Positions 13,932-58,982 of a stretch of 64,000 nucleotides of DNA are shown here, piece after piece. The translations under genes and the position numbers were made by a program. Each line of letters starts with the position of its first letter. Position 1 is the first letter of the stretch. This DNA comes from Podarcis liolepis (lineage: Eukaryota): assembly GCA_965112155.1 (NCBI GenBank), contig OZ218099.1. One strand, 5' to 3'. The notes beneath the pieces are model-generated. The model saw nothing but the letters and a program-made list of their open reading frames with translations. It was not told the DNA's origin and searched no databases.

Positions 13932-14131
13932 NNNNNNNNNNNNNNNNNNNNNNNNNNNNNNNNNNNNNNNNNNNNNNNNNNNNNNNNNNNNNNNNNNNNN
14001 NNNNNNNNNNNNNNNNNNNNNNNNNNNNNNNNNNNNNNNNNNNNNNNNNNNNNNNNNNNNNNNNNNNNNNNNNNNNNNNNNNNNNNNNNNNNNNNNNNNN
14101 NNNNNNNNNNNNNNNNNNNNNNNNNNNNNNN
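13932..14131. other. Assembly gap (200 N)
   Basis: Run of N; ORFs spanning it are artefacts. Confidence 0.99.
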
Positions 14132-20275: not shown

Positions 20276-20405
20276 CCAGTGTGGATGGAAGGCTAGGCAG
20301 CTGATGGCACCCACTCGCTGGCCCATGAATCCATCGTAGTACTTGATATTGTTGATCAGCTCACCATTCCCATTGTAGATTGCAGTGAATTGATTCATAG
20401 AGCCA
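20276..20405 (-). CDS. RPTOR: Raptor coding exon 33 (130 nt): (C)GSMNQFTAIYNGNGELINNIKYYDGFMGQRVGAISCLAFHPHW
   Basis: Manual translation; acceptor ctgcag|T, donor TGG|gtcagt. Confidence 0.97.
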
Positions 20406-20963
20406 CTGCAGAGGGAAACAGAGAACACAAGATATTGGTGACGTTAAACAACTGGTGGTTAAGTCCTAGAGATGAAGGTTTTCTACTCTTGTGCCATTTG
20501 TGGAGCAAGAAGCAAGTAAGCTTACAACAGCAAATGGGATTTTCTTTAAGCCATGAAATCATCAGCACAGTCTCAGCTATTAGCAGGTTCACAATGGAAA
20601 ATTCACATGCTCAGTAGGAGATTTAGGGAGGCAGGATGGGAGACACAACAGCAGGCAGGGAGAATATAACTATGAGATGGTTTTGAGTGAAAACCCCAGG
20701 CACCAAACTGCTGACACTGGACAGCAAGTCCCTAGCAAATAGTGCACTTTCTGCTCTTAAGGAAGGGAAACCCACATAATACGGTGAGCTGCAGCACCCA
20801 CCATAATTGAAATCCATGTGCTGCAGGTTCAATGAAGCATACAAGAATTGAAACACCTCAGCTGCAAACACGTGAAATAAGCCACACTGTTTATGCCAAG
20901 GAAAATAAATGCAAGTGTTTAACAATGGAGCAGGGTGGTATGCAGGCTGCATTTAGAACTTAC

Positions 20964-35901: not shown

Positions 35902-36008
35902 CTGAACTTTCATTTCTCGGTCTGTATCCCAGATTCTTATAATCCGTACATCTCCAGAAGTCATGAGAAGGCCAGTTTCCTGTTCCCAGTCCACCACCAT
36001 CCCTGCTC
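35902..36008 (-). CDS. RPTOR: Raptor coding exon 29 (107 nt): (G)AGMVVDWEQETGLLMTSGDVRIIRIWDTDREMKVQ
   Basis: Manual translation; acceptor tttcctcag|GA, donor CAG|gtaagc. Confidence 0.97.
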
Positions 36009-39000
36009 CTGAGGAAAGAAAAAGGTGTGCCATACAAATTTATTCTTGGTACATGTGGACAGATGAAATAAGTCAGAACATTGTGGGAATGAAATCTTCC
36101 GGTCAAGCAGAGCAATCCAACACAATGAGTGCACTGTGCATCAATGTTAGAATGTGGTAGGTACTGTGGACTTTGGGAAGTGGCAAGTTTTGAGAAAAAT
36201 ATATAACGGGGTGCAGGGTGGTGGTGGTGGCAGCCTTCAACAGTGGTTTCTGGTTGATTTCATTTGAATGGTTTTATTCACAGGAGTCACAAACTGCTTG
36301 TATGATACACAAAAGTGAGGGGAAAGTGTTTTAGTAATTATCTGTCCCCCTGTTTTTGTTCCCAGGGAAGAAAAAGACCATTCCTCTCCAATATAGCCAT
36401 AAGGTTTTTGTTTTGCTTTGCTTTTTTAACATAGAGATAACCAGTAAATTGCATTAGGCATGGAAACACTCAAATGAATTTGTTGCAGTGATACGACCTT
36501 CTCTTGTTTCTAATCAACAAAATCCAATGCAACATGTGTTTTTTCTCTGGTTTCTGTACCTGGGTTCCTTTATAAGGAGGTTGGGCTGCGATGACAAATG
36601 GCTCTGAAACAATTTAGGATTCATAGCAGTCTCTCCCTTAACCCAACAAGGCAGCAGTTGATTCTTCCTGCCACCCTCACTATGACTTCCACCAGGGCCT
36701 TTTATAGGATAACAAAACAGAACCCAAATAACGACTAATGCACCAATCTTCTGAAAGAGAAGTACTATGAAAAGTACCCAGCCCCACCAAAAGACCAGAT
36801 ATCTAGTCAAAAGATAAAAGCAAACTCTTGCATTTTTTAATCTTTTAACAGCAAAAACATGTAGCACTCCCTTAGATACTAACTGCCACCGTAAGGGCAG
36901 TAGCACCATAATGCAGGGGGACATTTATTTCTTATTTTAATGCATTTCTATAATGCTTTGTACTGAGTAAGTTTTTGAAGTGGGGTGCAGCAAAATAATA
37001 AAATCATATAATAAAAACTATTAGCTTTATCCAACCAAGGTCTATATACAACTCTATATAAACAGCAAATGGTATTGAAAGTCAATGAGAGATCATGCAG
37101 AAGTTGCAGGGTCGTACATCCCATGCCCCTCTCCTGATAAAGATCCATCAGGGCAACCAAGGAAGATTCAGTCCCCATAACAGGCCTGAGTCCAGACTGG
37201 AACGTGTCTAGAGATAATCAGTATCCTCCAAGAGTGCCTGCAGCTGGGACATCAAGACATCATAACAGCAGCACAAACGTTCTCCTAGTGCTATAAACAC
37301 AAGCAGCTATTAAGGGTCTTGTAGGACAAAAAAAAGGGGGAAGCTACTTCTCTTGCCCGCCTTGGATCGTCACCTGCTAGAGGTGCTGCTGCTGCACATC
37401 ACATTGCAGATCCTGATTTTATCAGGGGGTTGGATTGCATGACCTCCCAGTCCCTTTCCAACTCTATGAGTATGATCAAGGTATATGCTCTGAAAGCATC
37501 TTCCTAATTATCTTTGTCTTCATTCCCTTCATCCAGTGGCCACGCCCAGGCCCACTTTAATGTTTCTTGTGGCCTGCTGGAAATGCCGGCTGCCAAAACA
37601 CCTGAGCAAGTATGGAACTTGGGGGCTGCCCTTGGGCCCTTCGTTTGCTCTTACTGCAAGCAATGGGGGCGCAGGGTGGGAGGGAGAGAATGGCAGCAAA
37701 ACGGACAGTGCATATTTTTATCTGGACATACAAACTTATTGTTTCTTCAGCTTCCTTGGCAACTTGGAGGGGTGCTACAGATTCAGAGCAAGCAAAAAGG
37801 CGGCAGTTTAGATTATAAGCACCTCTAAAGCATTTTGCGTTTGTCATCCTGTTTATGGTCCGTATGACAAGATAAACCCAGCAGGCTTGAGATGGATGAT
37901 GCCTTTTCATCTTAAGCAGGCAGCACTCTAGGAAGAGATGCTTAAGCTGCCAGTTTCTCAGTCATTCATACTTACATTTCAGCACAAGAATCTTAACACT
38001 GTTTCAGCAGCAACATAATCTGCAGACCACACATACACAATATGTGGGTTTTTCTCCTTGCTTGTATGGCATGGTACCTTTGTTTACTTAGTGTCTGGAG
38101 GAAGTTGTCAGGTAGATGAGTCTGACTTTAGACTAGACGGACCGGTGGGTAATCACAATGTCCTGGGAGGAACTAAGCTGCCTATGACTGATGCTTTTAT
38201 AGCTTTTTGGATCAACTACTGTAATGTCTCTTTGTGGGACTCCATGGAGGTGTGGAGCTATTCTGCTCTCACATCTTCCCAGAACACAAAATAAAGTGTT
38301 CAACATTTAACTACCTCGTGAACAGAATGCTAAATAAAGGAGGAAGGATTTAAATTCCTGGCTCTGCCATAGTCTGACTGACCTTGAGTAAGACATCTGT
38401 TCTTGCCCAAGTCTCACTTCTTACAACTGTGAAATGGGGTTAATAAAGTAATTCTCTCTCTTTTGTGGGAAGGGAAGCAGAAAAAGAATGTTCATCATAC
38501 ATCACGTAAAAGGAGTTGGCTCTCTTGAAAGGTTTAACTGTGTGGAATGAACAAGACTCTACTCTTTAGTGGACGATATACAGATTTCTTCCTGAAGACT
38601 AATGAAAAATGTAAGCCTCTGCAAACGGGTGAGAAGGACTCCCTTCTTTATGCTGCTCTATAAAAATGGAAGCAGTCACTGTCTGAGCAATGGGGGTTCT
38701 GCTGAATCTTTAGCAGTTAATGACAAATATTGCTTCTCAATATGCTTATTTGCCTTTTGTCTCCTTCCCCAGTCACTTGTGTTTTATGAGAACTGCCTTC
38801 CTCTGTAAGTAGTGTGCTCTGGATTCTCAGCTGCTTCACTAAATCTTGGCAACTTCTTTGGCAACTATGCTCAAGAGGAAGTGACCTGGCCTGTTCCCAC
38901 ATAGTTCCAGGCAAACGATGCCGTCAGTGATAACAACCATTTTACAATATAAGGAAGCAGGGGAACCCTTTTTGGCCCTTGACAGAATATAGACTACGCT

Positions 39001-40479
39001 CTTCCTCCATGTAGTGACATGGAGGTTTATGTAGCTCTTGCCACCAGAGGGTGCCCATGTGCTGAGAACTAGGATGGCACAGCATCCCTCCACTCTCAAA
39101 GGATTGCAGCAGACAAGCAGAATCTGAGATGTTTAAGATGTGTTTTTAAACCCATTCATGAGACATGAAAAGCAAAAAAAGATCTATGGAGACAGCCGCC
39201 CTTTGCATTAAATCTAACTCATTCATAAGTGCATAAATATATAGAAAGCTATGAAATGCTAATAGAAAATGCTACATGATGATGAGCAAAGTAGCTTGTG
39301 TGCATTACCCACTTCAGGGCAAACTAATGTTTATTAAAGTAGGCCTGAGGTTTCTGGTGGTTTTCAAAGAGGGAACTATCATAACATTATTGACTCATGT
39401 TTACATCTCAAGTTCCTTGCGTCTTGCGGATCAGAGGCTCGTTGACGACTCTTGATTTCATTTTAATTAAAAAAAGAAAACCAACCTTTCCATGGGATTG
39501 GGGGATGTGGGGCACAGAGTCAAGACGACAGATCTTTTGGAGCCTTTCCAAACAATGTTCTTGCAAACAATAAAATCTGTGTGCAATTAGTTGTTTCTTA
39601 TTTGTTCCAGGAGTCCAAATGCCTGTTTGCAAAACAGTGCTCTCTGTTGCAAGGATATTGCATTTTTTCAGCACTCAAATAGCAGTATTTGTTCATGTGA
39701 AAATGCATCCATAGTTGCGAGCACAGTGCAAAGTGTGGCAGCATAAGCGTCACAGTCCTGAAGAGGACTAGTAACGCCAATAGAAATTATTGCTCTTTCA
39801 CTTCCTTATATGCTAAACGTTCCTCTGCTGTACAACTCAAATGCACAAACGCCATCCCTTCCTCTTCTAAGCAATGTCCTCCCATGTTGTGAACTGTCTT
39901 TACATAGTTATTTATTTATCTCCTGATTTTACACACACAGCAGCACAACACAACACAAACCAACCTTTGAAACTGGTTGTTTAAGATCTTTGTCAGAAGC
40001 CTCTCTCTGGATACCCCTATCTTTGAAGGTGAGGAGGGTGCCTACTGGCAATAGGGCTCTCTCAGCAGTGATGCTTCAGTTGTTTTTCTCCCCTTATCCA
40101 TTCATGTGGTGCTAGATTTGATGGTCTTTACTCAGCATCTTTTTGCTTTCCAGTGTGTTTTGTGTTACAGCTGGTTTAACATCTGTCTGCTGATGATGTT
40201 TGATTGCATTTGTTAGCATTTTAATATTTGTTGTGGTTTCTGATCATGATGTTGTGAAGCTCCCCCAGATCCAACAATCCCCTCCATGACATTCCCACAG
40301 GGCTCATGATGCAAGGTACTGCTCAGGTACTAGAGAGCTTGCTGCTATGTGCTCATGAGGAAATCTGTAATGGAGCCTACTGCCACAATTTGTTCCCAAA
40401 GAGGCAAGGTTCATGACAGCCAACATATTCTCACAGACACCACGTAAAAGAGCTTCCACCTTATTTCCATAAGGCATTA

Positions 40480-40705
40480 CAGTGGTACCTCGGGTTACAT
40501 ACGCTTCAGGTTACAGACTCCGCTAACCCAGAAATAGTACCTTGGGTTAAGAACTTTGCTTCAGGATGAGAACAGAAATCGTGCAGTGGCGGTGCAGCGG
40601 CAGCAGGAGGCCCCACTAGTTAAAGTGGTGCTTCAGGTTAACAACAGTTTCAGGTTAAGAACAGACCTCCAGAACAAATTAAGTTCTTAACTCGAGGTAC
40701 CACTG
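40480..40705. mobile_element. Tc1/mariner MITE, family A
   Basis: TA TSD, CAGTGGTACCTCG TIRs. Confidence 0.9.
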
Positions 40706-43700
40706 TACATAAAGTTGAGTGCATAAGACCCATGGCAGAAAGCTAATTTTAAAAATAATTCCTCTTGGCTTCTTCACGCAAGGACTAGCAGTTCTGCGTG
40801 ATATGGAAGGGTATTTTTAAAATATGTCAGACACTGGAACTTTCCTTGTAGGATTCCCCCAAAGTCAGAGGTGCATCTCAGAGGAATAGTTCCCTGCATA
40901 TGTTTCAGCAAAGAACCCTGGCATCAGAAACAGCTGCATTCCAAATACATTCTATTTAAATCATGTTTCCCCCCCCCCCATCCCCTCTCCCAAAATCACT
41001 GCTGTATCACAGTCTTTGTCTAACTGGCGTTTTGATTAGTTCAGAAATGTGTGCACAGGCCACAACACAACAGTATCCAAGAAAAGGAAAGCTGATCTTC
41101 TATACACTGCCCCCCCTCCTGGCTGATAAATGAGCCATGTCCCTGTTTTAATTTCCAGGCAGCAGTGGGGAGGCTGCATTACCTCATTATTCATTAATTC
41201 CTGAAAATGCCCCTTCAAGTGACACTCCTGTGCCAAGCATCACCCAAATGACAAAAGAAGACTCTCTAGAACACCGGGAGCCTTAATTTACCAAGTGAAA
41301 AGTGCCTCAAAATAGAGCTGCTGCTCCCCTAATTACTTTATTTTCATAAAAGACCTGACCTCTCTCAAGGCATCATGCTCTGTCTCTGACTACAGAGGCA
41401 CAACATAAGTTAATCCCACAGACCAATCAATGCTGGGATTCACCTACTGCCTTTTTAAAAAGAATAACACATCACCTCCTCATGAGACTCCTTCTGTCTC
41501 ATCCATATCATGGTGGATAATGAATGCACTTGGATGCTGGTTCTGAGACAGCACAAATGTGGCATGACATGCAGTTCTCCTAGACGTTTTCCGCCCCACA
41601 AAGCAGAGTTACTAAGGTCTCTCCTAGATGGAGCTTTAACACTGCCTTTTAAGTTCAAAATGTCTCCTTTACAAAAGCAAAACTCCTTATTGTGTTCCTT
41701 ACTTAGTAGTATTCCTGTTCTCTGCCCTGCTTCTCTCCTTGCCCCCCCAAACTTCATCCCTCCAGCTTTCTCACCCCTTACTCTTAAAAAAAAAAAAGTG
41801 CAAGACCCAATAACTTTTATGAGCTCCTGGGCTGGGGGAAGCTCCTAATCCCGCCCCAGGCCTTGCCTGGAGCTTCTTTGATTTGAACATTTATTTAATT
41901 ATAAATTGGATTTTTAAGCACTGCTTACTTTAAGTGTCAGATTGAAGGGAATAAGACCCTCAGACTTGACCAGGGAAATCTGTTATTAATGTCTTTTGTG
42001 GCTTTTGTTTTGCTAATCAGCAGCCTCATGGGACTGCTCTGAAGAGTGTGGAAGTGGTGCTCAGGGAGATTTGTAATTCTTTCCTTCCATACCCTACCCC
42101 TAAAGCAAACTCCCCCCTCCCTACATAAAGTCTGCTATAACTGGCATGGAGAAGACAGATGTGGACAGCAGCTCTTCCCCCTAAGCTAATAGTGATAGGA
42201 GAAGAATTACATTGGAGAAAAATTCATGGGATAGTGTTTAATAAATCTCTTTCTCCTGGAGTACTACTTCCCCACTCTTCAAAGCAGCCCCATGGGACTG
42301 CTAATTAGCAAATAAACTACAAAAGATCCCAATCACAGTTCTTCCAGGTCAAGTCTGGTTTGGACCTTAGAATGCATTAATTTCCCAGAAGGAATTGATG
42401 CAGTGGTATTTCCCTGGTAAATTTCTAAGGTTCTGGGAAGCAGGGGTGGGAGGTCTGGAGCACACTTTCTGTTAGTTGTGAGACTGAGGCAAGATGGAGG
42501 ATAGCCTAAGAGGATCCAACAACTGTCCAGGACACATTTACCACATTTGCTAAACTCCTTCAACTATCAGTACAACAACAAAAAGCAAACCCATTTACAG
42601 ACAGCCCTGCATTGCCTTTAGCCATCATCCAGTGAGTGAGGAGAAATGAGGCTGGACCACATGGTTATGCTATTGTGATAGATACTATTGGTTGGCAATC
42701 TCACATCCCCAAATGGACCTTTTCTCACTTTATTCTATGTCAAATGTAACAAACAAAAAAATGAATCAGAGACAAGGTTAGTCACATTTATCAGATGGGA
42801 TGGCAGTGTCTTTGCACTTTATAATCTGGAGCAAATATTTCTGTGCTTTTTGCAGTCATTTTGCCACTCTGAAACTCTCCAACTCCTCACAGAAAGAAAT
42901 GTGTTCTCAAAGACCTCAACAGGTGTGCCAGGCTGGCTCTGAAGCGGAGCTATGTATCTGTGTGCTCCTGACAGATTGTTGCTTCCAAAGCATCATCAGT
43001 ATTGATTCTCTATAGTGGTTGCAATAAGCTGGTCTGGTCCCCAGCCTATCAAAAGGAAACCCCTTCAGCCTCCACCCTTCCTAATTTTAGCTTTGTCAGC
43101 TAGCCAGCAAGTTTCTACAAAAGATGGGATGCTCATAGTAATCCATTGTATTTGCACGTTCTTCTCCACTGCTTCCCAATAACCAGATAAAGTTTAAAGG
43201 CCCCCACCTAGGAGAAGCCTGAATCACAGAACACACAGCCACCTTTGTTCTGATAATCACTGCAGACACATTCCAGCCCTTATCAACTAGTGAATATTAA
43301 TAATTCATAGAGCGCCTAAGAAGATTACATCAGCTTTCTGACACATACCACACATACCATGTCCTGTTGTGCCAGCCATCTGTCACTATCTCAAAAGCTG
43401 AAGCAACAGAGAAGGATTTCAAGTCCCATCCCTCCACAGGTTTTTCCCCCCAGTCTCAGTCTAAAGAGCTAAATACATGCTTTACTGTAGGTTGAAAATG
43501 TTCAAAACCTTTTCCAGACAATTAATTGCCAAAGGCGGAAACCAACTTTCCAGATTGAAACAAGGTCACACTTGCCATTTACTTCCACTCAGCATCCCAT
43601 AATTACAAATCAAAGAAACGTAGCAGTCAACAAAGACAGAGGCATTTCACGAAGAGATGCTCCAACATTCCAGACCATCTCTTGAACTGTATAAGAGTAA

Positions 43701-44121
43701 TGGTGGTGGCCGAGAAGCTGCTGTACCCTGAGCATGGCTGGCCTGCTGAGATCCTTGTATAAAGTGATCACACAACAATATTGCCTCTGCATATCTTGAA
43801 AACACTTTCGATTCCCACATTTTGTGATCAGGCTCCCGAAGCGAAGGAAAATGCACAAATCTCCTCCCTTTGCCTTTCTTCCACGTGGACACTTGAGGCC
43901 CACCTTGACAGAATATCAGATGTAGAAGCCCACACTGCATAGTACAGACAAGCAATACAAAGCAAGGAATGGGAAGGCCAGGAGAAGCTAAGCTGCCTTC
44001 CAAGAATTAACAGGACCCAGGAGATGTTAGAAGGAATGCCATTTTAAAAACAACAACACATATGATTACAAGGACCACCCCTCCCACGCTGATTGTAGGT
44101 AAGAGGAAAGAGAGCACTCAC

Positions 44122-44169
44122 CTCCCTGTTTACTTCTGTCAAGATAGATTGAAACCCTTCGGGCCAGAC
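44122..44169 (-). CDS. RPTOR: Putative alternative (cassette) RPTOR exon, 48 nt, phase 1-1: (G)LARRVSIYLDRSKQG(G)
   Basis: Acceptor ccctgtcttctcacag|GT, consensus donor GAG|gtgagt, length divisible by 3, open in the exon 28/29 frame. No expression evidence available. Confidence 0.65.
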
Positions 44170-45246
44170 CTGTGAGAAGACAGGGATTAAGGGGTTGATG
44201 CTAAGGGTAAGTTGGTCAGCCAAAGCAAAACAAATCTTAAAAAAAGGATTAGGAAAAGCAACCCAAAAGGAACAGAAAAGAACACAGTTAGAGAGAAGCA
44301 GTAGCAGCAGAAAGGCCTCCATTCAGGGAAGGAAGGAAGGAAGACGAGTAGGTTGATCACAGCAGCCATCTTAGGAAGCCATTAGCCATGAGGAGGAAAG
44401 CAAGACCGGTCTTCTTTCGCTCATGTGCTCAAATCCCACTCAGAAGGGCCCTGCTATACTCTACCTAGAATGAAAGGCACCTCGCTGTCAGCGGAGGAGT
44501 GAGAAATGAAAGCTGCGCTCCAAATGACCCCTCACCAAGAAAAACCCACAAAGAAACCCAACACCCTGTGAGGGGAGAGGTGAATCCAAACAGCCAAGCA
44601 ATGTGCTGCTCAGGCCTCACTGAGCCACCAGCTCAGCTGTGAAGCAATACAGTAGGCAGCAACAAAGCACACTTCAATGATTTGCTAATGAGCACTCATT
44701 CAGAGAGGAAGGACAATTTACAGAGGACTCTGCTCAAACAACTGTTTAAGTGGGGGAAATTAGCAGTACAAGGGGATTCATTAGAAGTCATCAGGAAGAA
44801 GGCTGGATAATGAGAGGAGCTGCAGGGTGGCGGCAGCAGCTCAGTTGTTAAGGACAGGGCAGCTTAGGCACATTCCCAGCCTAGCTGCCCTTGGTTTGCC
44901 CAAGGAACTCTAGAAAAAGAACCTGCTTGACCTTTTCCAGGGCAGGACTTGCATAGGCCACTCTCAAACACCATGGGCTCACCTTTAAAACAAGCCCCAA
45001 AACTGGGAGGAAGTAAAGCAGTGGTGATGGATGCCCTCAAAGAGCTCAGAGATGCACCAGCTGGAGGTGGCAGCCCATACTCTCCATTGTAAGGCATCAC
45101 TTGTTCTGTACGGTGGTCTGAGAGCACCAGCCAGAGTACTTTATTTATTTACATTTATATGCCACATTTTTTCTCCTTGGCTAGATGGACTGCCTCTCTG
45201 ACCTCAGGGAAAGATGTTCCTTATGTTGTTGTTTTTCTTTTCCCTT

Positions 45247-45490
45247 CAGTGTGGTGTAGTGGTTAAGAGAGGAAGTCTCATAATCTGGTGAATCAGGTTC
45301 ACTTCCCTGCTCCTCCATATGCAGCTGCTGGGTGACCTTGGGCTAGTCACACTTTTTTGAAGTCTCTCAGCCTTACTCACCTCACAGAGTGTTTGTTGTG
45401 GGGGAGGAAGGGAAAGGAGAATGTTAGTAGCTTTGAGACACCTTTGGGTAGTGATAAAGTAGGATATCAAATCCAAAACTCTCTTCTTCA
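45247..45490 (+). mobile_element. Squam3/POM-type SINE
   Basis: High similarity to 9917-10164; (CTT)-like tail. Confidence 0.85.
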
Positions 45491-47850
45491 CTCTTCCTAA
45501 TTCTAACTGGTAATACAGAGGATGTGGTTATGCTGATGGGAACTGCCATGTCCTTCCCCTACCAGTCTACAGTCTGACCTAGGAGCCTGCGTTATGCTTT
45601 CTGTTAAACCACTCATCTTAAACATCCTTTTTGTAAAAAAGAAAAGAAAAAAGTCACTCTGCCTATTCCATGTGAAACCTCGCATGCAATCTACATAAAC
45701 CAGGACCTTTTGAAATAGTGTCTGAATCACAAAACTGACACCTGTGGGAGTAGCATCCTCTCAGGAATCACCTTGAGACTGAAGCACTAACTTGCACAAG
45801 GCTTGCCCTGCTTTTATATCTTTCACATTTCCCCATGTCACCCTTCTCACTGGTTCAACTGCAAACAAAACCATCTAAAAGAGAACCACTCCACACACAC
45901 ACACACAAAGAAAACCCTGGAGAATAAAGGGGCTTGCTTAGTACCGGTCCATCTCTTGTTATGAGGAACAGACCAAGTCAGAATGACAGATCTGCTTGGC
46001 CAAAACAGCCAAGTGCTGAATTTATTCGGATGTTCATTTCAGCAACTTCCCCCCACCTCCTTCGGAGTGGTACAATATGAACTGTGCCTGCACTATTTCT
46101 GGTGGTGCCTGGGTGCTTTCATTAAAATGGTCATTATATCAGCACCAATTCAGCACCAACCTGGAACTGACTCATAATAATGTGCATAGATTCTGTGGTT
46201 CCCTCCACCCCCTGCCTGATTCTCTAGTGCTCACACAGCTGTTCTAATCTTCACATGATCCAAAATATTACGACTTTGCATAATGTGAAATTTGCTCCTG
46301 TCTTTCTTAGACCTAATCCTTTAAACTTTGATGGACAATGAATGTATTTGGTAGATTTGAGCCAGGAAAGGGCATAACCAATGCTAAGAAAAAAACCTGT
46401 TTGCTGTTGCAGTACGTAGTCAGTACAGAGCTGAAGCCTTTGGGTTTCCTATATATAGGCACATGAATGTTTTGCTGGAGAATTACACACACTTTTATAG
46501 GATTCCTTTCCTTCCATCCCTCTTAATCCACTCCAGCCTGTTCTTCACAAATGAGAAAGCTTGCACAAAGAGGTCAGGTCCACCCACTCCTTTAAGTGTG
46601 TCCTCTGCTCCTGCTGTTCATTCAATCCCCTGGTGAGGTCAGTGACCCATTTTTCATCAAGATGATTACATCACCAACTGAGGATTAGAAGGTGGAGGAG
46701 AAAGATGGAGGAAAAAGAAACCAACAGCAGAGGATGCTAAAATTCAGGTATCGTTCCACTAGCATGTAAAAAGAGGAAGGAAGAGGAAGCACCATACAGG
46801 AAATCGAGGCCACAAGCACAATGGTCTCAGAGAGACAGGAGTCAGATTACAGCCCTGTGCCAAACTGCACCAGCAGTCTCCACAGCAAAGGCCAGGACTT
46901 CTAACAACAATCTCATTTCTACAGAGGACTCATTTAATTCACCCTGCACCTTTGCACAGAGTGAATTTAACTGACCCTCTCATTCCCACAGCAATATGCA
47001 TAGGTAGTAACAAAATCAAGGACCGAAAGAGAAATTTAATAGTTCTGTAAAGGAAGCACAATCATTCTCCCTTAGTGCTGTTTCTTATTCACCGAAAGAG
47101 TGAGGAAATTACCGGGAGAAAATCCAAGCCATAGTGGAAATCAGAAGCAACAGTCACAAGGGACCTGGGCAACTCTTCTCTACAGAAATCATTTGCTCAT
47201 GCTATAGAAAAGTGTGAAAAGGGGATGATCAGGAACAGCTGTTCTTTACTATCAAAAAACAAACCATTGCCCATTACCCAGGCTAGGCTGTATCTGTAAA
47301 TCAATGCTTCATGGGTATATTTTTTATGTCAACATGTTGGTTTGCTCTGCTCTCATTACTCTTACACGTTTTATTTTTTTATGATGCCTGAACGTTGTTT
47401 AAAAGGAGTTGTTACGTGGGCAGGTTTTTCTTGTCTTCTCATCTTCTGAACTGCAGCCACAGACAACAGCAGTGGCAGACACTTCAAAGGAAGAGCCAAG
47501 GATACAATTGGATTTGACTGCACACACCAGCCTCTGCTGGAGTCCAAGGGTTAAGGCAACATTTGCTTGTACACATTTTATTGAACTGAATCAATGAAAT
47601 GCCACTTCTCTTCAGCCTCAAACTTTTTTTGTGTAGTGACTCAAAACAATAAAAATGAATTATTTTAAGATAAGAGATGATAGCTAAACAGAGTATATTT
47701 TTAGCCAAAAACAGTCACTCTCATTCAGAATTTATAACAAAGGGCTTATAGGGTGTTAACATCAGAAGTGAGGATATCAGAGTACAGCAACACATATCAA
47801 GTTGTGTCCATGTGATAGCAGGTTCTCGCCTTACCTTAAACCTTTTAAAG

Positions 47851-47970
47851 CAGGATTAGGGAACCTGTGACCCTGCAAACATTGCCACACTACAACTCCC
47901 ATCATCCCTGAACCATTGGTCATGCTGGCAGGGGCTGATGGGAGTTGAAGGCCACAAGTTCTTCACCTAC
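47851..47970. mobile_element. Short palindromic hAT-like MITE
   Basis: aactcccatca...tgatgggagtt inverted core; related to 5511-5637. Confidence 0.55.
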
Positions 47971-48380
47971 TTCAAAGGAATTAAACGGGTTAGAAAACTA
48001 CATTTCCAGTTTAACATATTGATTGTTGAGAGAAGCAATGTATTGGCTATCAGACTACGAGTGTCTAGACGAATATTTTCAAAATTTAGTTATGGACTTT
48101 GCTTGTCTATTTTTGTGAAGCAAAATGTAACACAGGATTTATCCCACTTTCTTTGGACTTCAAAGCCAGCTCTCAAATATTATTGCCAGCGTTGGACGCA
48201 GTATCATTAATATCAGCCTCCAGTGAACTGGTGCCCTCTACATGTTTTGCACTACAGTTCTAATCACCCCTAAACCTTGGCCACACTGATTGGGGATGAT
48301 TGGGTTGGCTGCTTTATATGTATTCCATTTAAATTAGCCTTTTTGCTTAGTGCATTTGTACTTGAAGTATTTGCTAATGT

Positions 48381-48383
<3 letters not shown>

Positions 48384-48417
<34 letters not shown>
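48384..48417 (+). repeat. (TG)n microsatellite
   Basis: Direct reading. Confidence 0.95.
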
Positions 48418-48418
<1 letters not shown>

Positions 48419-48691
48419 CACACAAACCTCACAAGTATGCTAAAGTTAAGATAATTTCTTTCTAGATTTTCTGATTGCAAATTCTGGATAAATTCATTGG
48501 TTTTGGTGGGGATAAGCAATAAAAATAACAGAAAAATGGGAGAAGAGCATGTAGTGGCGCATAAGGAAGTCTAACTAAGTTCTAATTTCTCCTATGATGA
48601 TTAATTCAGTGCTTGTTTTGAAATACACACACACACACACACCCCTCTGCCTACTGGGTAATCCAACACTGGCTATGCTGATTCTCAAATA

Positions 48692-48917
48692 CAGTGATAC
48701 CTCGGGTTACATACACTTCAGATTACAGACTCCGCTAACCCAGAAATGGTACCTCGGGTTCAGAACTTTGCTTCAGGATGAGAACAGAAATCGTGCTCTG
48801 GCGGCACGGCAGCAGCAGGAGGCCCCATTAGCTAAAGTGGTGCTTCAGGTAAAGAACAGTTTCAGGTTAAGAACGGACCTCTGGAACGAATTAAGTACTT
48901 AACCCGAGGTATCACTG
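48692..48917. mobile_element. Tc1/mariner MITE, family A (variant TIRs)
   Basis: TA TSD, CAGTGATACCTCGGGTT TIRs. Confidence 0.9.
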
Positions 48918-50468
48918 TATGTGCTTTCAAGATGATTTAGGGTGAGATGTGTGTTTAATGAACATCACGTAAGCTTTAAAGCTTGGTAAAGGGACTGTGA
49001 AGACAAGACCTGGAGAGATCAACAAGATTTGACTTTGGTACTCTACTCTCCACCCAAAGCAGCAGAGGGAGTTCAAGAACTGCAAGATAAGCATCTCTTA
49101 GCTGCTTTTATTGACAGTATTCCTGTAAATGGCAGGATTTCACTCACAGCAATGTTTATAGCAGACATCTAACTGCCCATACTTTATGATCGGTTCTGTG
49201 CACATGTAATGGTGCGCTATGGAAGCTCGGGTTTGCAGCAGCTGCACCTCAAATTTCAGGCTACCTGGCCGAAAAGGAAGAGGAACAGAATCACCATAAT
49301 ATTCTTTTCATGGAAAGGACCAGAGGAAGGTCTGTCAAAGTTTTAAGATCTGAGTGAGGCATCGCCTGTGAATTCCAATGAATAGCTAGAAGGAACATTA
49401 TACAGGAAAAGCAGGGCAATGTGAGGGAGGAAGGGGACATTAAAGGAAAACATGTAGGCAGCGCTACTGAAATGTAAAACCCTTAATGTTCAAAGGGCAG
49501 AGATTTTTATTTTGACGTATCAAGCCACTATCACTTACTGGCTATGCCAGCACAAATATTTTAAATGGAATGCAAAGTGCTGGTTTAGCAACAGGAAGTT
49601 TTCAAATAAGCGGTTGTCAGGCTTCAGTGCTGAGATGCACAGGTTCAGAAATGAGAACTGTCAGAGCATTAATGACTCCTCGTGTCTTGGAAGCAGAGCA
49701 AGTATCCTTCATTATCACATCCGGCATAGTGGGGTTTTTTTGGTCACCTAACCCTGCACCTCAGTCTCTCAGCCGGGCTTGTTAAGTGATGGGTTTCTTG
49801 TTGACACCTAACCCTGCCTGGATTCTCAACATGTTCGGGACACTCAAACTACTTGCACTACCACCCTGTAAATGTGACATTTCACTTGACCTTCCATCCT
49901 CCCTCCACAATGAACAGCAGGGAATACTGCAAGCGGTGTGCCCAAGTCAAGGCAGGCTGAGCAAGGTAATATGGGAAGCATGCAGAGCTGGGGCAAAAGG
50001 GAACAAGCAAACCAAAAAAAGGATAGTGGCAAGAGGTGAGTTTTTGGGGTAAAACCCCAAAGTGAGAGGAGAAAACCAGCTGCAATAATGAGTCCAAGGA
50101 AGGGCAGTGCTTAGAAAAGCCTCACACAACAATTCTCTATCTAGAAGCAAAAAAGTTAGATCTGACCTCCAGTGATGAAACTCCAGCGCAGTCCAGGAAG
50201 GGAACTCACCTGTACTCCTCTGTTCAGCACTATGAAAAAGATTGCATCTATTCCCCATCTGGCATCTCTGCTTAATCTTACATTTATTATTTGTTTTTAA
50301 AGTATCGCGGGGCAGAAATTTCTCATCGGCTCCATCAAGACCAAAACATTGTTAACAAGGTATTACTGTAGACAGCGAAGACCACTCCATGTTACCTAAC
50401 CCTGTTCCAAATGATGGCAAACTACTTTTGCCCCTTCAAATCCAGATAGAATGCTAGGTCATACCTAC

Positions 50469-50573
50469 CGCGTGTTGTTGGTAGCATGTCTGACAAGCCC
50501 TGCCAGGCCGTTACCATCTCTGGATTCTTCTCCAAGTCAGCAAAGTTTTTCCACACCCTTATAGCACCATCAT
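50469..50573 (-). CDS. RPTOR: Raptor coding exon 28 (105 nt): (D)DGAIRVWKNFADLEKNPEMVTAWQGLSDMLPTTR(G)
   Basis: Peptide present in ORF 50422..50661; acceptor ttcaag|AT, donor CGCG|gtaggt. Confidence 0.97.
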
Positions 50574-57645: not shown

Positions 57646-58982
57646 CTGCCAATAAATAATAATAATAATAATGAATACAACAGGGGAATGGCAAAAAAAG
57701 GCTTCTTGCGATTCCAAATGCATGCTAATTTAAACCAGAACAGGGACCCTTCAGCCCATGCAATCTGACCAAAACCAGCAAGGGGCAGATGAGGTTTTTC
57801 TGTTCTTATACACTTCATTACCTTCTGAACTGCACATCATCCACCACTGGGCCCCAGGGCTGTCAAGTGATCAAAGCCTCAGTTGTTTCTTTTAACCAAT
57901 TAAAATAAATATGATAAAATGTCTACATAGGCAATATTTTCAAGAAATCTAATGCAGATAATTTTTCATTGACAAACGACAGGGAATTCAACTGGAATGC
58001 ACTGCCTGAATGCAGATGTATACATAGATCAATTGCAAAAATAATATTGGCACTGAAATCCTCTCACTCGGGACATTTATTTTAAAATGCACATTTTAAG
58101 CTTATAGCTGATAAACCGTATCCGTTATTTGACAAATATTCCAAAACCTATTCTTTACTCACTCTTTTGAAAAGGTCTATTTGTTTTTGTCTTGTCTCAT
58201 TCAGGCTGCAAGTTCTCACAGAAAGCGAATGAATACCCCATCTTCTTAAACAGCAACGTAAATTTATGAAGCTCATATAAATGGCTTGTCACAGCAGATA
58301 TATTTGAATCTTGTGGCTGCTGTTATGAACCCGCAAGCTCATCCCTAGTACAGGACCATTTTTACACTTGTCTCCAAGGCTTTCTTCTGTTTAGATGGAA
58401 GGAGTGCAACTTCTGCATAATTCCTTATGAATAAAAGGCTCCATAAAGTATGTGGCAGGGAAGTGTAAACACAGAAGGTATAATTCAAAATTGGAGACAA
58501 CATGTGGAGATCCTGTACTTCTTCCTGTCGAGGGCCTGAGCAGCTAGGGGATCGTAAAGATTCTGCCCCGTTATTTAAGGAAGCAAGCACACTCAATTGC
58601 AAGAAGTTGCTGCTGCTCATATTTTGGGAATGGCTGCTGAAAACAATTAGGCAGAAGTGTAACGGCATGAAAACATACATATTAAATGTCAAACGTGAGT
58701 TGGCTTTCTGTGCAGAGAAAGGTGTACTTTGGATTTTCAGAGCCAGGCCTGCAGTTTTCAAACCAAGCACTCACTCAGCTCAGGTGTTTTGCTTTCATGA
58801 CGACATCCTTTGAAATTATTATTCATGCCATGATGAAGACTCTGCTGATATAAAACAGTGCTGCTAATCAGTTGGTACTGTAGCCTGAGAGACCAGGCAT
58901 TGGTTACCACTGAGAAAAGAGGTGTGGTAGCTGTTAAATTTGTTCTAGACCAATAGGAATCCAAGGAAGAACATTTCTTTTA

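Follow-up and report, generated by a model that had tools for sequence, protein, structure and literature searches.

A conserved 48-nt cassette exon in a Raptor intron of the lizard Podarcis liolepis and the 16-residue WD40 insert it encodes

Raptor exons and a 48-nt cassette at the locus

We analysed a stretch of 64,000 nt from Podarcis liolepis, referred to below as the window. Lizard Raptor proteins, aligned by tblastn, mapped from about residue 974 to the C-terminus onto its minus strand, the matches running between 57648 and 19215. Two constitutive Raptor exons flank the intron under study. Translation of the upstream one (50469..50573, minus strand) yielded DGAIRVWKNF...MLPTTR, ending one base into a codon (phase 1); it is identical to residues 1090–1123 of the Raptor chain (1335 aa) in solved structures of mTORC1, and the human protein chains of these structures were the source of our residue numbering. 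The downstream exon (35902..36008, minus strand) was recognised from its translation and from matches to 363 library proteins at E ≤ 0.001. Its first two bases (GA) complete the codon begun upstream, and it continues as AGMVVDWEQ...MKVQ.

The intron between these exons (36009..50468, minus strand) is 14,460 nt long, has GT..AG ends and is followed within the window by six coding exons on the tblastn map. A first-pass annotation, made from the letters of the window, had placed a hidden cassette exon in a ~14.5-kb Raptor intron 28. The measured length agrees with that setting, and so does the number if human RPTOR has 34 exons, as we take it to have.

Two irregularities were seen elsewhere in the window. 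Positions 13932–14131 are a run of 200 N, representing an assembly gap or a masked stretch. At the exon junction 21082–20966 / 20404–20267, Raptor models of Hemicordylus (X1 and X3) and Pelodiscus (X3) carry 10 extra residues (AASFPCLQPS, VVSFPCVQFS) that resemble a translated pyrimidine tract read from an alternative upstream acceptor (window ~20405–20440, minus strand). In the window itself, AG is absent from the ~35 nt upstream of the acceptor at 20404, and a 30-nt extension translated by hand meets a stop.

The cassette exon occupies 44122..44169 on the minus strand and was delimited by sequence, translation, tblastn and protein comparison. Read across its boundaries (slashes), the strand runs ...ccttaatccctgtcttctcacag/GTCTGG...CAGGGAG/gtgagt, the exon extending from 44169 to 44122. 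With the one base carried over from the preceding exon, its 48 nt translate as (G)LARRVSIYLDRSKQG(G) and contain no stop, while the remaining two frames are unrelated or closed. The 3' splice site region (44170..44239, minus strand) comprises a canonical CAG acceptor, a pyrimidine tract with pyrimidines at 12 of the 14 positions from −5 to −18, and a branch-like TTAAT. The 5' splice site (44104..44121, minus strand) is GTGAGT, so the boundaries are cag/G and G/gtgagt. The length is divisible by three, the frame is open and the phase (1-1) is that of the neighbours. Since the upstream and downstream exons are both phase 1, inclusion of the 48 nt keeps the reading frame. The acceptor, pyrimidine tract, branch-like TTAAT, donor, length, phase and open frame had been described in the first-pass annotation, and sequence and translation bore them out.

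We scanned the surroundings of the exon for motifs of splicing regulators. No UGCAUG was found within 300 nt of the exon, and the nearest UGC lay 58 nt upstream of the acceptor. The 180 nt upstream of the exon are pyrimidine-rich and contain UCUU and YGCY motifs, which only weakly suggests control of the PTB or MBNL type. The scan around the exon pointed to no clear splicing regulator.

Chance expectation and conservation of the exon

We estimated how often such an exon would be found by chance using a rule set that required a GTRAGT donor, a YAG acceptor, at least 11 pyrimidines out of 14, a length divisible by three and an open phase-1 frame. Three candidates passed on the minus strand of the window: the cassette at 44122–44169 and two decoys, of 117 nt (49148–49264) and 135 nt (58775–58909), both recognised by the rule set only. 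The decoy peptides had no match among the ~550 Raptor proteins that we fetched, whereas the cassette peptide was common to 105 of these proteins. Both decoys are probably chance pseudo-exons. Dinucleotide shuffles of the 14,460-nt intron yielded 0.11 rule-set candidates per intron, or 0.007 when AG was required before the GT donor. Splice signals and an open frame are, on their own, suggestive but weak evidence for an exon; what raises 44122–44169 above chance is the comparative evidence, i.e., conservation and annotated transcripts, which is decisive.

At the nucleotide level, a 68-nt stretch around the exon was near-identical in 23 small sequencing runs, which came from 12 studies and represented about 10 coded organisms. 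The runs containing the exon together with its intron flanks are very small (13–187 million letters) and may be target-capture sets for conserved elements. For four of the 23 runs, one contig per run was compared with positions 43700–44600 of the window; the aligned pieces covered 44054–44233, 44078–44231 and, twice, 44104–44239. No difference inside 44122–44169 was found in these contigs of four organisms. Over 88–132 nt of intron flank, the same contigs showed 6–10 substitutions and as many as 10 gapped positions, the 10 gapped positions being carried by the two more distant contigs. Upstream, the alignment of all four contigs reached 44231–44239, the only differences being point changes and small indels in 44190–44212. 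Downstream, it reached at least 44104 in all four, and 44054 and 44078 in the two closer ones. In the distant contigs, similarity extended beyond the exon for ~70 nt on its upstream side and ~18 nt on its downstream side. The exon and its proximal intron, at the 3' as well as the 5' splice site, are thus more conserved than the distal intron. This comparison of nucleotides gives the profile of a strongly constrained exon whose proximal splice regions are conserved as well; it is not evidence of splicing.

Identity across an exon combined with conserved intron flanks, as seen in the four contigs, is also what a regulatory poison exon would display, and ultraconserved-like exons with conserved intron flanks are often of this kind. 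Such an exon would lower Raptor output and give rise to no protein isoform. The cassette, however, is a multiple of three, is free of stops and leaves the downstream frame intact, and its protein sequence is conserved, with substitutions of a conservative kind. With neither a premature stop nor a frameshift, the decay-inducing class was rejected, and we give the poison-exon reading practically no credence.

In all four contigs, including the one from the run labelled as RNA, the exon was present with intron on both sides, i.e., in the unspliced or genomic form. The first-pass annotation had proposed a search for reads across the junctions 50469–44169 and 44122–36008; neither junction was among these contigs, and the spliced long form was found in relatives only.

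Long and short Raptor proteins

Queries in all searches were single exons of the window or natural proteins from databases. Full-length scoring against a gecko Raptor (Paroedura picta X3) was used to collect related proteins. Among the best 120 proteins, 50 had exactly GLARRVSIYLDRSKQGG between MLPTTR and AGMVVDW, one had an insert starting GLTRR, and 68 had the plain junction. When only the junction region was scored, the ranked proteins were all of the short form, since proteins with the insert are penalised. Pairwise comparison showed the insert to be a clean addition of 16 residues at a single point. Searching the downstream exon against a representative protein library, which returned many short fragments, additionally identified a partial model from the teleost Prochilodus magdalenae (P0024, KAI4894127.1), in which ...LARRVSIYLDRSKQGG is joined directly to AGMVVDW and then to the following exons. 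No other carriers were found in the length range of this short fish fragment when it was used as the query.

Long and short forms were modelled together in single species: Paroedura (X1/X3), Podarcis muralis (X3 with 1351 aa, X4 with 1335 aa), Sceloporus (X1–X4), Varanus, Anolis sagrei, several snakes and many birds. Two further carriers come from sources other than genome prediction. One, P0310, is a full-length Raptor of 1352 aa with the insert, encoded on a contig of 6,498 nt assembled from a sequencing run. This contig must be spliced, because one Raptor intron alone spans 14.5 kb. The window exon aligned with residues 1125–1141 of P0310 at 100% in tblastn, and P0310 tied as the best match to the Raptor exons of the window. 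The insert was also present in the UniProt entry of Crotalus adamanteus, which we believe to be transcriptome-derived. Many of the carriers are automatic gene models, and some of the bird models are projected by homology, so not all of them are independent. Included and skipped forms are both documented in relatives, by the paired isoforms and by the spliced 6.5-kb contig.

Taxonomically, the insert was annotated in squamates (Podarcis muralis, Anolis carolinensis X1 and X5, and others), birds, alligator and the turtle Pelodiscus. Mammalian carriers were Equus przewalskii X5 (..YLDHSKQGG) and Pseudorca crassidens X5 (LARKVSIFLDR..). In teleosts, the insert was identical in Alosa, Engraulis and Denticeps, read ..SICLDR.. 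in Cyprinus and was also present in Prochilodus. The chimaera Callorhinchus milii carries GITRRLSIYLDRSKQGG. All variants conform to the pattern [LI]-[AT]-R-[RK]-[VL]-S-I-[YFC]-L-[DE]-[RH]-S-K-Q-G-G. Judged from these sequences, the exon dates to the ancestor of jawed vertebrates and is under strong purifying selection. The first-pass annotation had called the exon hidden and had proposed to look for the peptide in other vertebrates, adding that it might be conserved and already annotated. Conservation was found in reptiles, birds, fish and two mammals. The description of the exon as hidden or new has to be dropped, as the gene models of dozens of species already carry it.

These proteins bear on a rival reading of 44122–44169, as a pseudo-exon arisen by chance or as conserved non-coding sequence that was wrongly threaded into gene models and is unused in mRNA. 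Such an origin would agree with the two minus-strand decoys that also satisfy the splicing rules, and with the unspliced state of the contigs from all four runs. Against it, the encoded peptide shows only conservative changes between chimaera and mammals, the 6.5-kb contig encodes a full-length Raptor with the insert and is hence spliced, and many RefSeq annotations model included and skipped forms together. We consider this explanation very improbable. The exon is real: in relatives it occurs in spliced transcripts and in gene models, beside the skipped form of the same species.

Several models showed other sequences at the cassette junction. White shark (Carcharodon) proteins P0489 and P0540 have an insert of 64 residues, the elephant seal (Mirounga) protein P0447 has GSRGDAGAVYVSPG, and the char (Salvelinus) protein P0161 has QPSSSAHS. 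In shads (Alosa, P0503 group), the cassette has an upstream extension of nine residues. These variants probably represent alternative acceptors, a retained intron or model errors. Outside vertebrates, a basic insert of 15 residues, AETVSRTRRLNKERL, which is unrelated to the cassette, occupies the same propeller position in Raptor X3 of the brittle star Amphiura filiformis (P0191); to go by this sequence, the intron position bearing the cassette may host optional exons outside vertebrates too.

A second optional insert was noted near Raptor residue 840, which is outside the window. It has 23–25 residues (IMQVRVKLDCRFKPQRLPSAGDLVH in lizards, IMQVGLACRLKPQRLSNPGELVH in birds) and combines freely with the 16-residue cassette, giving lengths of 1335, 1351, 1358–1360 and 1374–1376 aa. 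Two entries looked anomalous. A 298-aa 'endonuclease V isoform X1' of Muntiacus reevesi (P0423) sits in a 90% cluster of bird and reptile Raptor proteins (the cluster of P0337) and may be a chimeric or mis-clustered model. In an invertebrate Raptor-like protein (P0021), two copies of the downstream propeller segment are present, at residues 516 and 896; this duplication looks like an artefact of assembly or modelling.

The insert in the WD40 propeller and its serine motif

The insert GLARRVSIYLDRSKQG follows the position equivalent to Gly1124 in the 1335-aa Raptor, within the WD40 region. The numbering relative to the solved chains and the long isoforms agree on this point, in line with the first-pass annotation, according to which the cassette adds a peptide to the WD40 region while keeping the frame. 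We predicted the structure of a natural Raptor with the insert and the complete propeller, the 1166-aa rattlesnake protein P0408, with AlphaFold and an alignment of 134 sequences. The WD40 blades were modelled with pLDDT values of ~85–93. The insert residues 936–955 had values below 50, which may partly reflect gaps there in about half of the alignment rows, and formed coil with one short helical turn. They are flanked by strands 922–928 (EMVTAWQ) and 959–963 (MVVDW), the last and first strands of adjoining blades. The model thus predicts a flexible surface loop between two blades that adds no strand. The serine of the insert, located in this predicted low-confidence coil between two confidently modelled strands, may be accessible at the surface.

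Around this serine, the core R-[RK]-[VL]-S-I is invariant in every variant of the insert, with Arg at −3, Arg or Lys at −2 and a hydrophobic residue at +1. R-R-x-S followed by a hydrophobic residue is the consensus of PKA, and hydrophobic-x-R-x-x-S is the pattern of CaMKII and PKD. R-R-V-S-I fits the former, and the Leu or Ile at −5 would add a fit to the latter. AMPK prefers a hydrophobic residue at +4; Leu/Ile at −5 and Arg at −3 agree with its motif, but every variant has Asp or Glu at +4, and because of this acidic residue the fit is partial. The motif of Akt, S6K and RSK (R-x-R-x-x-S) does not fit, because the residue at −5 is hydrophobic. Of the two kinase assignments in the first-pass annotation, the RRxS-hydrophobic motif was therefore retained, and that to the AMPK family held only in part. 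The tryptic peptide VSIYLDR was not found in the literature that we searched.

The residues following the serine are equally invariant, which makes a docking role a serious rival to a role in phosphorylation. The insert would then be a protein-binding or structural element of the propeller, such as a docking loop that changes the choice of partner or substrate, with the serine kept for binding or packing. All 16 residues, including I-[YFC]-L-[DE]-[RH]-S-K-Q-G-G, are near-invariant from chimaera to mammals, exceeding what a minimal kinase site comprises. Loops of this kind form the interaction surfaces of propellers in the WD40 architecture, and the predicted position of the insert is of that type. 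The predicted disorder, with no stable contacts, argues against such a role, which we regard as possible rather than probable.

Interpretation and comparison with known systems

In our reading, 44122–44169 is almost certainly a coding cassette exon of RPTOR that is ancient and alternatively spliced. Use of the CAG acceptor and the GTGAGT donor by the spliceosome would place 48 nt between the constitutive exons without changing the frame, so that inclusion would turn the 1335-aa Raptor into a Raptor of 1351 aa. The 16 added residues are predicted to form a loop between the blade strands EMVTAWQ and MVVDW. The R-[RK]-[VL]-S-I core would be a linear motif that most likely accepts phosphate from a basophilic kinase of the PKA, CaMK or PKD type, and this putative phospho-motif could give the long isoform an additional regulatory or binding input into mTORC1.

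More speculatively, the long form may be a distinct mTORC1 scaffold of all jawed vertebrates, mammals included, in which a propeller loop contributes either a serine switch controlled by a kinase (PKA, CaMK or PKD) or a docking motif. It would have escaped notice because the short form serves as the reference protein in human and mouse. We offer this proposal tentatively and think it could easily prove wrong. In the literature that we searched, we found nothing on the long Raptor isoform or on a function of the insert. The exon itself is already known, being annotated for numerous species in public gene models. Finding it as a sequence feature changes nothing, and its value is that of a lead for the study of isoform-specific mTORC1: an insert nearly unchanged since the common ancestor of chimaera and mammals, with an invariant basophilic serine motif. 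If the insert does alter the regulation or partner choice of mTORC1, an isoform layer would be added to a much-studied signalling complex.

The closest known counterparts of the window exon are the public long Raptor isoforms. Podarcis muralis X3 (XP_028570571.2, 1351 aa) has the same peptide at the same junction, and the insert is identical or near-identical, at the identical junction, in Anolis sagrei X3 (XP_060620287.1), Apus apus X1 (XP_051491087.1) and Callorhinchus milii X1 (XP_007886856.1). They represent the same exon, and nothing of substance sets them apart from that in the window.

The putative site can be compared with the established regulatory phosphosites of Raptor that tune mTORC1, namely Ser722 and Ser792 (AMPK) and Ser791 (PKA). 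These, too, are basophilic serine motifs on Raptor, and the R-R-V-S-I of the cassette is PKA-like. They differ in that they are experimentally proven and lie in a constitutive disordered linker before the WD40 region, whereas the cassette serine is putative, isoform-specific and located in the propeller.

Alternative splicing of the same gene also produces RAPTOR_v2, a human variant reportedly described in a 2009 paper as being without exons 14–20. That product is a large multi-exon deletion of the HEAT/linker part; the cassette is an insertion of 16 residues in the WD40 propeller.

Finally, the cassette resembles neural microexons in being short, frame-preserving and deeply conserved and in adding a surface loop to a folded domain. 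Neural microexons are up to 27 nt long, depend on SRRM4 and have a UGC just upstream of the acceptor. The cassette, in contrast, is above this usual limit at 48 nt, with its nearest UGC at −58, and its assignment to the SRRM4-type neural microexons was rejected on these two differences.
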